64,000 bases of DNA from Asterias rubens (Eukaryota), in assembly GCF_902459465.1 (NCBI RefSeq), contig NC_047069.1, positions 12,276,001 to 12,340,000 on the forward strand. Reading direction: 5' to 3'. The notes below the pieces were generated by a model that saw nothing but the letters and a program-made list of their open reading frames with translations, did not search any database and was not told where the DNA came from. Of this stretch, positions 19,630 through 59,524 are shown piece by piece; the first letter of the stretch is position 1; each line of letters opens with the position of its first letter. The position numbers and the translations under genes were made by a program.

Positions 19630-22405
19630 ATGCTTTCAAGAGGACAGCATGCTGTGCTGCAGCAGTGCTTGATTCCAACCTGGACATCAAGGTCACAAAG
19701 TCTCAATCATCTCGTTAAAAGTCTCCACCAACTATCCAATCGGACTGCTTGCACTGGGTGCCGCAGAGACAGAATCTTGCAGCTTCGTCAAAACCCATGG
19801 AGTCGTAGAGTGGAGAATTACCTCAAAAATGCCAGAGGATTCTGCAGCACAAAGAATTGGACTCAAACATGCACGAAACAGCATCATCTTTTGCAGAGTA
19901 GAGAAGCTTTTCAAATTCAAGGCATCGTCCACAAGCCACTCAAGGCAGCAGTTTTTCTAAGACCTTTATCGTCGGAATCAGACCCCGGTCAGAGTGCCTC
20001 ATTTAAAATTGACATTACTGAGGAAGGCTTGGTGGATGATGTGGCCAAAGAACTTGATGCTGAGGGGGCGGGTGAAATCAAAATTCCAAAGGGGAAAACT
20101 TTGCCTAGGAACGGCTCAAAGAGGAATGGCTCATTGACGGTAAACATTCTTTTGAACACCGAGAAGCTGGTTTTAGTGGGTTTTTTAATAACAACTTTAT
20201 GTACAGTACAACAGCAGAATATGGCATTGCCATTCTCCTGAGGATGATCAGAGCATACTAATAGAAATGTCAAAATGTCAATCAATGGTTCTTTTCGTTG
20301 GTCTTAGGTTCGAACCCCACCTGAGTGATTTGCCTGTGGATTTTTTTTCCCCACAGAACTCTGGGAAAGTGCTGAGTACATAGTGCTTTATACATATCAG
20401 TGTGTCTGGGAAAAAAATGTTTGTGCTATTTATCCCCAATGCAAAAACTAACATTAGGTTTGGGTCGTTTTTTTTTTTTATCTGCAGGAATCCCTGGTAA
20501 GCGTTGGCAAACTTGTACCAGACAAGATTGTCAATCTCTTGGATGAAGAAGGGGAGTTGTTAGGTTCACTGCACCGTGCTGAGGCCATTAAACAAAGTCA
20601 GAAAACCGGCCTCAAACTTGTGTTGGTCAACTCAAAGACTAAGCCGTATCCAACATATAGGTACAGGGAAAACTTTGAGGAGTGAAGCTTAAGATAAAAA
20701 TAATAATAATATTGAATATTTCTAGTGCACCATGTCTGTCAATGATGACACTCCTGGCGCAAAAACAAGAACTCTGCTACATGTATATATACAAAAACAA
20801 CCAAAGTTCAAACATGTCAAAAGCTACGGTTTCCGATATATTTCTGTTTTGAGATGTTTCTTGAATTGAGAACAATTATCTGCCTTTCGGAGATGAAGTG
20901 GGACGCTGTTATGAGTTCAAATTAACCCAGGCAATACATGGATATGAGAAGAACTCTAAAGAGAACACTTGGATTAAAAAGTGGTTGACAAAAAAGCAAA
21001 ACTAACCCCTTGACACCTTTGGCAATTGTCAAAGACCAGTGTTCCCACTTGTTGGTGTATCTCAACATATGCATAAAATAACAAACCTGTGAAAATTTGA
21101 ACTCAATTGGTCATCGAAGTTGCAAAGGAATAATGGAAGAAAAAAAACCCTTGTCACACGAAGCTGTTCTTTCAGATGCTTGATTTCGAGACCTCAAAAT
21201 CTAATTCTGAGGTCTCAAAATAAAATGCAAATATTTTAGTGAAAACTTACTTCTTTCTCGAAAACTACATTACTTCAGAGGGAGCTGTTTCTCACAAGGT
21301 TTTATCATAGATTTTGTACTTTCAACAGCTCTCCATTGCTTGTTACCAAGTAAGTTATTATGCTAAAAAGTATTGTTAGTAACTATCAATAGTGTCCACC
21401 GCCTTTAACCTAGGGAAAAAGCTTGTCAGCATGTGACAACATACCATGGGGTCGATGCAGCCAATAAGGTCCCTTGCTGCAGGGTTTTTAGTTAAGTTCT
21501 ACTTTCCCTCAAAAACGAGACCTGACCAAATCCTTACTCATCTCTTCACATCAGATTAATGACGGGTAAACAACTCCACCAAGAGCAGATGGTACACAGA
21601 GAGAAAGCCAAAAACGCCAGTGCCCAAACACAGATCAAAGAGGTCCGATTGTCCGGTAACATAGAAAAACACGACCTGGAGGTCAAGCGAAAGCATCTGC
21701 AGGGCTGGCTGAAAGAAGGAGAGTCGCACGTCCACGTCAGAGTGACTGTGATGGGTGGAGGCAAGGGAGTGAAGAAGATCACTAAGGAACAACAGGTGGG
21801 TTAGGGTTCACAAAATATGGAAAATAATTTTGAAGGGAAAGAATTTATTTGTTTTTCGGACGAGTCCTTCCATTTGGTTTTCAGTTTTGTTCTGTTTTCA
21901 ATAAATACACTCTGAAACCAAGCTTGGGAGCCAAGAAAGATTACTGGAATTTGTTTGGTCTAATGAAAAATGCACTGTGTAAGTTATTATTATTGTTAAA
22001 AATGTTTTGTACGTAGGATTTGAAACTTTGCATATTGGTGGAAGTATAACTAAGAGAGGTTTGCGGTAACAATATGTGAATATCTCTTTTGAGTAGTGTT
22101 GGTTCTGAAAAAAAAACGGTGGTTAACGGCCTCAACATTAAAACAATTTGTTTATTGTTACTTGTGTTTACTAGATGGCAGTTGTCCACCAGTTGATGAA
22201 TGGCATTGAAGACCGAGTCACCTTTGCAAGCAAGCCAAGGGATATCGGCAGGGAGGGTATGAACCTCTCCGTGGTCCTCAGACCTATGTCAGCCAAGGAG
22301 AAGGCCAACAGAGTCAAGCAGAAGAATGCTGAGGAGAGCCTGAAGCAGGCAGCGGGAGACTCAAGGGAAGAGGCTAAAGTTCAGGATGAGAAAGTGGACA
22401 GTTGA
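19630..22405 (+). CDS. MTIF3: Mitochondrial translation initiation factor IF-3 (~384 aa)
   Basis: Coding exons 19630-20139, 20488-20660, 21555-21795 and 22175-22405 are phase-consistent. The IF3 N-domain reads VNLLDEEGELLGSLHRAEAIKQSQKTGLKLVLVNSKTKPYPTYRLM. The IF3 C-domain reads IKEVRLSGNIEKHDLEVKRKHLQGWL. The N-terminus is Arg/Ser/Leu-rich and presequence-like. AATAAA lies at ~22461-22473. Confidence 0.9.
20290..20455 (+). mobile_element. SINE of a third family in MTIF3 intron 2
   Basis: B box GGTTCGAACCC and tail ...TTTATCCCCAATGCAAA. The same tail occurs at ~1700-1815 and 31385-31483. Confidence 0.65.
21010..21408 (-). mobile_element. MITE family A in MTIF3 intron 3
   Basis: Homologous to the other family A copies. 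It ends ...CCACCGCCTTTAA. Confidence 0.85.
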
Positions 22406-22459
22406 ACAATGTGGACACATTCGTTCCTGTTTCTGGTGTTTGTTAGGGTGTAGTGGTCA

Positions 22460-59000: not shown

Positions 59001-59524
59001 TGCTACAGGTCAATGGTTTGATGATGCTCTTGACAAGTTTTAGTAGAAATTTAACTTTCTCTTGCTGACCCCTTGCACCAATGTCACACATGTTGGTGTC
59101 TGCCACGCTTACTATTTTGGGAGTCGACGGTAAGCGTATTAACACAGCATTACCTGAACTTCCTAAATGCACTGTTAGTCAAACACACAGGTATATTGAC
59201 TCCCAAAATTGGGCAACCAAGGTTATTGTGAAGATGACGTCAAAACAGGTTAATTGGATTATGGGATACTTGACGGCCGAAGAAAGTTGACCCATGAACC
59301 CAATAGTGCCAGTCTTGTCAATCTTGCTCAAATTAATGTTGTTTATTTTTTTTATTGGTAGGAGTCTTTTTGGTACGATAGCTTCACTGGTGACCATCGG
59401 ATGGTGTAGCTTATCGGCATCTAAACTGTTTGTAACGGCGCTAGCCATGGACTCCCAGCAACTCCTTGTGGCCTACCCATGTGCCCTCCTCTATGGAGTC
59501 TTCGCTCTTCTTACAGTTTTCTAA
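56072..59524 (+). CDS. YIPF5: Yip1 domain family member 5/7 (Yip1p orthologue, 268 aa)
   Basis: Exons 56072-56220, 56946-57112, 57565-57599, 57893-58003, 58681-58862 and 59362-59524 are in phase. Motifs: [72 protein letters not shown]. Confidence 0.95.

Follow-up and report, generated by a model that had tools for sequence, protein, structure and literature searches.

A convergent MTIF3–GTF3A gene pair of ancient origin in a five-gene stretch of an Asterias rubens chromosome

Results

Gene content of the window

The window, that is, the whole stretch of 64 kb analysed here, is free of N runs and carries five protein genes between positions 19630 and 59524 (Table 1). They follow each other as MTIF3(+), GTF3A(−), a YIPF6-like gene(−), RPL9(−) and YIPF5/7(+), which is the block that a sequence-only reading of this DNA had described. 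All five genes are intact and spliced, and their models have canonical GT-AG introns and zero internal stops. The ends of the block coincide exactly with the gene models, as the ATG of MTIF3 is at 19630 and the stop codon of YIPF5/7 ends at 59524. MTIF3 and GTF3A are arranged tail-to-tail, again as proposed, and RPL9 and YIPF5/7 head-to-head. No sign of an intervening gene was found within the block, ten inter-gene open reading frames of 81–134 aa gave no Pfam match, and Rfam and tRNA matches are absent from the window. As a piece of sea-star chromosome the stretch is unexceptional: it is gene-dense, and its five housekeeping genes are intact.

Table 1. Features of the window, and the convergent MTIF3–GTF3A pair in other genomes (gaps lie between the called gene ends)
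Feature	Position	Strand	Description
Large upstream gene	1359..16885	−	Head-to-head with MTIF3, outside the five-gene block
MTIF3 (mitochondrial translation initiation factor 3)	19630..22405	+	4 exons, 384 aa; CDS exons 19630-20139, 20488-20660, 21555-21795, 22175-22405
3′–3′ spacer between the stop codons of MTIF3 and GTF3A	22406..25934		Holds the 3′ UTRs of the two genes; two high-copy repeats, at about 23250-23850 and at about 24050-24450
GTF3A / TFIIIA	25935..37315	−	10 exons, 547 aa; CDS exons 37315-37223, 34764-34664, 33143-33053, 32133-32045, 30551-30478, 29817-29731, 28793-28747, 28273-28190, 27312-27157, 26756-25935
YIPF6-like (YIPF alpha3)	41029..46457	−	214 aa from 6 exons; CDS exons 46457-46347, 45542-45464, 43746-43704, 43338-43204, 42605-42448, 41147-41029
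RPL9 (uL6)	49227..52576	−	4 exons, 191 aa; CDS exons 52576-52531, 51948-51743, 50593-50380, 49336-49227
YIPF5/7 pro-orthologue (YIPF alpha1)	56072..59524	+	6 exons, 268 aa; CDS exons 56072-56220, 56946-57112, 57565-57599, 57893-58003, 58681-58862, 59362-59524
Pair in Patiria (L001)			Gap 977 bp
Pair in A. amurensis (L006)			Gap 3.3 kb
Pair in S. purpuratus (Strongylocentrotus; L002)			Gap 3.6 kb; neighbour carries TFIIIA_zf
Pair in Anneissia (crinoid; L005)			Gap 780 bp
Pair in Antedon (crinoid; L012)			Gap 399 bp
Pair in Callorhinchus (elephant shark; L009)			Gap 167 bp

The exon reading frames of MTIF3 contain the Pfam domains IF3_N and IF3_C on the plus strand, and the named proteins found in an exhaustive search are almost all animal "IF-3, mitochondrial", so that the gene stands nearer to the mitochondrial IF3 of animals than to its bacterial counterpart. 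Mammalian mitochondrial IF3 is the best match of a single exon among the solved structures of the PDB. The exons are 87–97% identical to MTIF3 of A. amurensis (P0087; CP134955.1, 17.59 Mb), and the junction of exons 3 and 4 is confirmed by an RNA contig.

The GTF3A model has exactly nine C2H2 fingers, as detected by a regular expression, and after finger 9 a motif resembling KRSLAS (motif described in PMC6991959) followed by a Thr/Glu/Ser heptad tail. The nine tandem fingers, the TFIIIA-specific finger model (Pfam TFIIIA_zf-C2H2, E 5e-9, in addition to zf-C2H2, both on the minus strand) and the KRSLAS-type motif identify the gene as TFIIIA, and Xenopus TFIIIA (1tf6) is the best PDB match. The exons are collinear with GTF3A of Patiria, S. 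purpuratus and the crinoids, and two splice junctions are confirmed by RNA contigs. First exons at 34569-34805 in the frame of the long open reading frame were rejected, as the finger sits in another, shorter frame.

RNA contigs span almost the whole spacer between both genes. The GTF3A contig runs from the exon 27157-27314 through the stop codon to at least 24427, and the MTIF3 contig reaches at least 22568 and probably further. Poly(A) signals are found at 22462, 22839, 23180 and 24808 on the plus strand and at 25751, 25031, 24062 and 23982 on the minus strand. These Logan contigs, which carry no strand, suggest that the 3′ UTRs of MTIF3 and GTF3A overlap in Asterias rubens.

RPL9 is recognized by two Ribosomal_L6 repeats (Pfam, in two exons, minus strand), its length of about 190 aa and its PDB matches to human and other RPL9 proteins (E 1e-25). 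Since the model has introns, it is not a processed pseudogene. The Yip1 gene on the minus strand we tentatively take to be YIPF6 because of its collinear similarity to human YIPF6, the tool evidence being at the family level, where YIPF6 and YIPF4 are not separated. Its first exon is not fixed but probably contains an ATG near 47357-47389. Both YIPF genes have a Pfam Yip1 domain on their strand, together with the three motifs reported for the YIPF family (PMC6682643). The YIPF5/7 gene has in addition the sequence EPPLLEE and is therefore a YIPF alpha1 member, whereas the YIPF6-like gene is devoid of the EPPLEE motif; in fact E-P-P-L-E-E is specific for YIPF alpha1, and the split into YIPF5 and YIPF7 is specific for vertebrates (PMC6682643). 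The PDB contains no YIPF protein, and the Atlas returned generic Yip1 clusters only.

Upstream of MTIF3 lies a large gene whose A. amurensis orthologue has 1261 aa and no Pfam domain on record. The exon reading frames of this gene matched only TPR_12 and Colicin_im in Pfam, both far below the cut-offs, and the Atlas gave a weak SH3TC1/TPR-like lead from one exon that a second exon did not repeat, so that the gene was rejected as a sixth member of the paralogon. It was also rejected as FIP1L1, and the Fip1 motif is found nowhere in the window.

The convergent pair in other genomes

Besides this window, the convergent pair was found in Patiria, A. amurensis, one sea urchin, two crinoids and the elephant shark, where the GTF3A exons of the window align collinearly. 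The orientation is always the same, with gaps of 0.17–3.6 kb between gene ends whose ranges suggested coding spans, a point checked in Patiria only, where the MTIF3 gene end is 6 nt past the last aligned MTIF3 residue. The pair is thus present in vertebrates and in three of the five echinoderm classes. MTIF3 maps to JADOBP010000012.1 (1.40 Mb) in Patiria, AAGJ06000011.1 (2.80 Mb) in S. purpuratus, OZ206124.1 (27.30 Mb) in Antedon and CM083786.1 (24.15 Mb) in the hemichordate Ptychodera. Within 10 kb of MTIF3, GTF3A is absent in the hemichordates Ptychodera, Saccoglossus and Glandiceps, in the holothurians Apostichopus and Holothuria and in the ophiuroid Amphiura. The survey covers echinoderms, hemichordates and, among the chordates, one shark. 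As queries, the full-length Patiria MTIF3 matched only other sea stars, a profile of 13 sequences added only Ptychodera and the reading frame of MTIF3 exon 1 gave no match. These searches yielded no MTIF3 of amphioxus, a protostome or a cnidarian; blanks in them say nothing on the absence of the gene.

As the pair is common to echinoderms and Callorhinchus, it is older than the split between echinoderms and vertebrates. Its absence within 10 kb of MTIF3 in the six ambulacrarian genomes shows that retention is not obligatory and requires three or more independent losses. One could argue instead that echinoderms and vertebrates acquired the adjacency separately, through random rearrangements inside one linkage group, given that none of the three hemichordates tested has the pair, hemichordates being the sister phylum of echinoderms, and that the location of both genes on the same linkage group raises the chance of a secondary adjacency. 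However, both clades have the same order and convergent orientation, with very short spacers, and by our own calculation the chance that two given genes become adjacent and convergent in a lineage is ∼1/(2N), or roughly 5e-4 if the chromosome has about 1000 genes. In addition, a FIP1L1–MTIF3 adjacency in hemichordates and crinoids (see below) ties the hemichordate locus to a neighbourhood whose halves flank GSX2 and GSX1 in human. We therefore regard a separate origin as highly improbable.

Neighbours of the pair

In the crinoids Anneissia and Antedon and in the enteropneusts Ptychodera and Glandiceps, FIP1L1 is located head-to-head with MTIF3 (Pfam Fip1, E 1e-15 to 1e-18). Neither Saccoglossus nor any of the eleutherozoans tested, the present window included, has FIP1L1 beside MTIF3. 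On the other side of the pair, the gene past GTF3A is SRA1 in Patiria, and in the crinoids an AMP_N/Peptidase_M24 gene followed by PPAT, with no homology to YIPF6 past GTF3A in either. SRA1 and the crinoid neighbour genes were searched in the window and none was found. Thus the order of the five genes is not kept in these other invertebrate deuterostomes, and of the synteny of more than 500 My that had been proposed for the whole block, the part that stands is the MTIF3–GTF3A pair, the only adjacency of the stretch shown here to be ancient. The neighbours seen in other echinoderms are SRA1, LARS1, a MeaB-domain gene (MMAA-like) and a PPAT-like gene; their human orthologues are at 5q31, 5q32, 4q31 and 4q12, respectively, which fits one linkage group.

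Discussion

Relation to the ParaHox paralogon

In human, MTIF3 adjoins LNX2, and YIPF5, YIPF6, YIPF7 and RPL9 are 5–15 Mb away from the nearest ParaHox gene. GTF3A and MTIF3 are convergent at 13q12.2, RPL9 is on chromosome 4 and YIPF5 on 5q31. The human orthologues of the block match the ParaHox regions, of which there are four, on chromosomes 4, 5, 13 and X (PMC2723086, PMC3698058), in agreement with what had been proposed: YIPF7 is on chromosome 4 (PMC5206652), YIPF6 is X-linked (PMC3875636), and some teleosts have mtif3 and gsx1 beside gtf3aa, zebrafish having gsx1 (PMC6991959). Around GSX2 the human order is SCFD2/FIP1L1-LNX1-CHIC2-GSX2-PDGFRA, with FIP1L1 less than 1 Mb from GSX2 (PMC8945303), and around GSX1 it is LNX2-POLR1D-GSX1-PDX1-CDX2 (PMC7036260). 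FIP1L1 is beside LNX1 and close to GSX2 in the same manner as MTIF3, as noted above, is beside LNX2 and close to GSX1. A third LNX copy was turned into exons of Xist (PMC3162930).

That all members of the block map to one paralogon is largely what known macrosynteny predicts, as one echinoderm chromosome corresponds to one vertebrate paralogous set with scrambled gene order (PMC8809688, PMC11310086). Nothing seems to set YIPF6, RPL9 and YIPF5/7 apart from the other genes of this ancestral linkage group. These studies are at the chromosome scale; the tail-to-tail pair and the trio with FIP1L1 are survivors at the level of gene order inside that frame. The published ancestral ParaHox flanks are CHIC, PRHOXNB and genes of the Btk/Ccna/Rad50 type (PMC2723086, PMC3698058), unlike MTIF3, GTF3A and FIP1L1, and we found no paper that ties any of these three, or a YIPF gene, to ParaHox.

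In line with the earlier suggestion that the block may lie near the ParaHox cluster, the whole five-gene stretch could also be read as a remnant of a wider regulatory neighbourhood of ParaHox, at a distance of roughly 1 Mb or less from an intact Gsx-Xlox-Cdx cluster in the sea star. Sea stars have in fact retained an intact ParaHox cluster (PMC3710244, PMC11310086), the human GTF3A–MTIF3 pair is three genes away from GSX1 (from LNX2 onwards, PMC7036260), and FIP1L1, the ambulacrarian neighbour of MTIF3, shows the proximity to GSX2 described above. Nevertheless, the 64 kb window contains neither a homeobox gene nor a gene of the ParaHox flanks (LNX, CHIC, FIP1L1), the genes around the pair have already been reshuffled between echinoderm classes, and the other human orthologues are at the megabase distances given above. 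Thus, we consider this reading doubtful.

Origin and retention of the pair

It is likely, in our opinion, that the window contains an ancient convergent pair derived from an ancestral FIP1L1/MTIF3/GTF3A trio, and that the other three genes are members of the linkage group in a lineage-specific order. FIP1L1 beside MTIF3 in crinoids and enteropneusts, together with human FIP1L1 on the GSX2 side and human MTIF3 on the GSX1 side, indicates that this trio was probably situated close to ParaHox prior to the vertebrate duplications. The deuterostome ancestor would have had FIP1L1 head-to-head with MTIF3 and MTIF3 convergent with GTF3A, and the convergent pair would have been passed on with its 3′ ends touching or overlapping. 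The two vertebrate genome duplications would then have left FIP1L1 beside LNX1-CHIC2-GSX2 (4q12) and GTF3A–MTIF3 beside LNX2-POLR1D-GSX1-PDX1-CDX2 (13q12). The pair might have survived because its tiny spacer is filled by both 3′ UTRs, so that hardly any break in it would be harmless; weak selection may be added by shared chromatin or by the 3′ overlap. YIPF6, RPL9 and YIPF5/7 would be present by way of the ancestral linkage group which gave rise to the vertebrate 4/5/13/X ParaHox paralogon.

A stronger functional tie has been considered as well, in which TFIIIA (5S rRNA, cytosolic ribosome supply) and MTIF3 (mitochondrial translation) are co-regulated through overlapping convergent 3′ UTRs or through a common chromatin domain, and selection purges rearrangements that separate both genes. 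The stop codons are only 167–977 bp apart in the shark, the crinoids and Patiria, RNA contigs fill almost all of the spacer in Asterias rubens, conserved pairs as a class show an excess of co-expression (PMC3514665), and an eQTL of human MTIF3 is in some tissues also associated with the expression of GTF3A (PMC10023155). On the contrary, this eQTL left GTF3A unchanged in edited human cells (PMC10023155), at least three losses of the pair have occurred in lineages that remain viable (the hemichordates, the holothurians and one ophiuroid), co-expression is uninformative for two broadly expressed housekeeping genes, and conserved pairs are enriched for the 5′–5′ and not the 3′–3′ arrangement (PMC3514665). 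A functional tie of this kind appears unlikely to us. Even less probable is the combination of both ideas, namely that FIP1L1-MTIF3-GTF3A is an unrecognized ancestral ParaHox flank still near Gsx-Xlox-Cdx in sea stars and crinoids, with a functional 3′ overlap holding the pair together and linking the capacity for cytosolic translation to that for mitochondrial translation.

Comparison with known conserved pairs

Under the origin from an ancestral trio that we prefer, MTIF3–GTF3A resembles the conserved ancestral microsyntenic pairs (CAMPs; Irimia et al. 2012, PMC3514665), which are likewise adjacent unrelated genes of non-developmental, housekeeping function with a short intergenic distance and an orientation kept for more than 500 My. 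It differs from them in being 3′–3′, whereas CAMPs are enriched for 5′–5′, and in being seen in two of three sampled major lineages, whereas at least four are needed for a CAMP (PMC3514665). The synteny of the gtf3a neighbourhood, with mtif3 named beside gtf3aa, has been described across vertebrates (PMC6991959). The neighbours are the same as here, but that study covers vertebrates only and is silent on orientation and on invertebrates; our results add crinoids, sea stars and a sea urchin. MTIF3–GTF3A is another well-documented case of order-level synteny maintained since the deuterostome ancestor, unusual for its 3′–3′ arrangement. The current macrosynteny picture is unchanged by this finding, which overall is real and in part supported.

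The head-to-head adjacency of FIP1L1 and MTIF3 in crinoids and two enteropneusts is new. FIP1L1, MTIF3 and GTF3A are easily recognized single-copy markers, by which the human ParaHox regions at 4q12 and 13q12 would be traced to a single locus that existed before the duplications. They should help in rebuilding the ancestral ParaHox flank and in spotting degenerate or "ghost" ParaHox loci, and they allow testing whether short convergent spacers protect adjacencies neutrally.

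Gene content

The sequence-only reading had proposed five genes between positions 19630 and 59524, and its description, order and end coordinates were correct as judged by Pfam, structure matches, spliced models and RNA contigs. Pfam scans of exon-sized ORFs yielded IF3_N, IF3_C and one Yip1 match on the plus strand, and TFIIIA_zf-C2H2, C2H2 fingers, Yip1 and two Ribosomal_L6 matches on the minus strand; the top solved-structure matches of single exons were mammalian mitochondrial IF3, RPL9 and Xenopus TFIIIA. Reading frames and GT-AG sites were used to assemble spliced models of the five genes, none of which contains an internal stop. 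In two species RNA contigs connect exons 3 and 4 of MTIF3, and one contig extends from a GTF3A finger exon across the last exon. None of 10 scanned inter-gene ORFs (81–134 aa) had a Pfam match, and Rfam and tRNA searches returned zero matches in the 64 kb (G+C 32–44%, N runs absent).

Coordinates of genes in the window and at other MTIF3 loci
Feature	Position	Strand	Remark
Gene head-to-head with MTIF3	1359-16885	-	1261 aa in A. amurensis
MTIF3	19630-22405	+	spliced model, 384 aa
GTF3A	37315-25935	-	spliced model, 547 aa
YIPF6-like	46457-41029	-	spliced model, first exon unplaced
RPL9	52576-49227	-	spliced model, 191 aa
YIPF5/7	56072-59524	+	spliced model, 268 aa
FIP1L1, enteropneust	L003:1-9448	-	Fip1 motif
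FIP1L1, enteropneust	L011:1-8287	-	Fip1 motif
FIP1L1, Anneissia	L005:1-6643	-	Fip1 motif
FIP1L1, Antedon	L012:2885-9325	-	Fip1 motif
SRA1, Patiria	L001:20863-22597		MTIF3-locus neighbour
LARS1, echinoderm	L008:15505-21452		MTIF3-locus neighbour
MeaB-domain gene (MMAA-like) and PPAT-like gene, Antedon	L012:1-1349 and 21053-21055		MTIF3-locus neighbours

The GTF3A model has exactly nine C2H2 fingers spaced by ∼30 residues and carries a 12-residue motif, resembling the KRSLAS motif of vertebrate Gtf3a (PMC6991959), and then a repetitive tail. Its last exon (25935-26756, minus strand) encodes ∼270 residues of Thr/Glu/Ser-rich heptads derived from 21-nt tandem repeats (26059-26634), and the repeat number varies, as alignments with contigs of a related species (organism B) are fragmented there and contain indels.

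The minus-strand Yip1 protein has the family motifs, lacks the EPPLLEE motif and is, as we take it, collinear with human YIPF6 rather than YIPF4; it is very probably YIPF6. The plus-strand Yip1 model shows three YIPF family motifs together with EPPLLEE, a type of motif specific to the Yip1p/YIPF5/YIPF7 subfamily, whose split into YIPF5 and YIPF7 is vertebrate-specific (PMC6682643). RPL9 (start at 52531-52576) and YIPF5/7 (start at 56072) are transcribed away from each other, 3.5 kb separating their start codons, and the RPL9 ATG is directly preceded by a long pyrimidine run that resembles the 5'TOP tract found in ribosomal-protein mRNAs.

The MTIF3–GTF3A pair

MTIF3 of other deuterostomes was retrieved by an exhaustive search that used the IF3_C exon as query. 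Protein identity of MTIF3 exons to the window is 87–97% in Asterias amurensis, 60–76% in Patiria and Acanthaster and 40–55% in Strongylocentrotus; with the A. amurensis locus the window is collinear including non-coding frames. This places the source of the window among the asteriid sea stars, close to A. amurensis but distinct from it. We compared 12 MTIF3 neighbourhoods, all from echinoderms, enteropneusts and a vertebrate, onto which the exon ORFs of the window were placed by tblastn. In six, the gene directly downstream of MTIF3 is convergent with it and has TFIIIA exons in collinear order, with gaps between called gene ends of 167 bp (elephant shark), 399 bp (Antedon), 780 bp (Anneissia), 977 bp (Patiria miniata), 3.3 kb (A. 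amurensis) and 3.6 kb (S. purpuratus). The Patiria gene range ends 6 nt past the last aligned residue, which suggests that the ranges are coding spans. In Ptychodera, Saccoglossus, Glandiceps, Amphiura, Apostichopus and Holothuria neither a TFIIIA exon nor another convergent gene was seen within 10 kb of MTIF3; in Apostichopus LARS1 comes after MTIF3.

Crinoids are the sister group of the remaining echinoderms, and the presence of the pair in crinoids thus makes it ancestral to echinoderms. The ancient microsynteny that had been proposed is borne out by the convergent pair in sea stars, sea urchin, crinoids and elephant shark. Given the identical vertebrate arrangement, the simplest reading is that the deuterostome ancestor already had the pair and that it was lost at least three times afterwards. 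That echinoderms and vertebrates acquired it independently is unlikely, as by our calculation two genes on a chromosome of ∼1000 genes become an adjacent convergent pair with a chance of ∼1/(2N) = 5e-4 per lineage. Synteny around gtf3a is reported to be vertebrate-wide, and mtif3 is named beside gtf3aa in some teleosts (PMC6991959).

Flanking genes and the ParaHox neighborhood

At the loci compared, conservation does not extend to the whole block of five genes that had been suggested. On the side of GTF3A that faces away from MTIF3, Patiria has SRA1 and the two crinoids have an AMP_N/Peptidase_M24 gene and then a PPAT-like gene. All of these are absent from the window, and nothing homologous to YIPF6 was seen beyond GTF3A at these loci. 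Human SRA1 (5q31), LARS1 (5q32), MMAA (4q31) and PPAT (4q12) belong to the same paralogon as the window genes. Going by these generally known positions, the genes behave as members of a single ancestral linkage group that has been reshuffled internally; thus, the location of all five human orthologues on chromosomes 4, 5, 13 or X is non-random but expected. Echinoderms and other animals have kept ancestral linkage groups with scrambled internal order (PMC8809688, PMC11310086).

On the other side of MTIF3, the head-to-head genes of both crinoids, Ptychodera and Glandiceps have two exons in common. These exons match Pfam's Fip1 motif at E 1e-15 to 1e-18, which identifies the gene as FIP1L1, with 0.55–3.4 kb from start to start. 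FIP1L1 is not beside MTIF3 in the window, the eleutherozoans tested or Saccoglossus. In the window a large gene in which no domain could be recognised (no Pfam match above threshold) takes its position; one exon gave a weak TPR/SH3TC1-like lead in the Atlas, which a second exon failed to reproduce.

Human MTIF3–GTF3A sits just outside LNX2, and Xist lies at Xq13 beside CDX4. The order at 13q12.2 is LNX2, POLR1D, GSX1, PDX1, CDX2, PRHOXNB, FLT3 (PMC7036260); at 4q12 FIP1L1 is found with LNX1, CHIC2, GSX2 and PDGFRA, within the ∼1 Mb SCFD2-to-GSX2 interval (PMC8945303), and a third copy of LNX degenerated and became part of Xist (PMC3162930). Two duplications and subsequent differential loss could have produced the gene sets of 4q12 and 13q12.2 from one ancestral order. 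A single such order, GTF3A(+) MTIF3(-) FIP1L1(+) LNX(-) ... GSX(+) XLOX(+) CDX(-), with human strands taken from general knowledge, accounts for both regions. Hence the idea of a ParaHox neighborhood is supported for the MTIF3–GTF3A end of the block, through the FIP1L1/LNX order near human GSX2 and GSX1. ParaHox proximity is supported for the ancestral vertebrate locus. Our literature search found no paper tying MTIF3, GTF3A, FIP1L1 or YIPF genes to ParaHox.

Persistence of the pair

The 3.5 kb between the stop codons are nearly all covered by RNA contigs. The GTF3A 3′ UTR extends to at least 24427, and MTIF3-side contigs of higher depth reach ∼24879, just after an AATAAA at 24808; these strandless Logan contigs suggest that the 3′ UTRs overlap. 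So little sequence separates the stop codons in shark and crinoids that the UTRs necessarily adjoin or overlap there. If a spacer consists entirely of UTR, it would offer almost no harmless landing site for rearrangements, and this scarcity alone could account for the long survival of the pair and also for its occasional loss. It is possible that functional coupling keeps both genes together, as they are similarly transcribed in zebrafish (PMC6991959) and have a common eQTL in some human tissues (PMC10023155), but the fact that the pair has been lost repeatedly speaks against any strong functional constraint.

A short, high-copy interspersed element, in which ARAGORN found no tRNA, occupies 23250-23850 in the spacer and 26850-27250 in a GTF3A intron (summed RNA contig depth >10^5-10^6); the two copies are 87% identical (23543-23707 versus 26989-27153). 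ORF translations similar to it occur at 24-233, 31778-31942, 39475-39814, 55231-55568 and 63521-63923.
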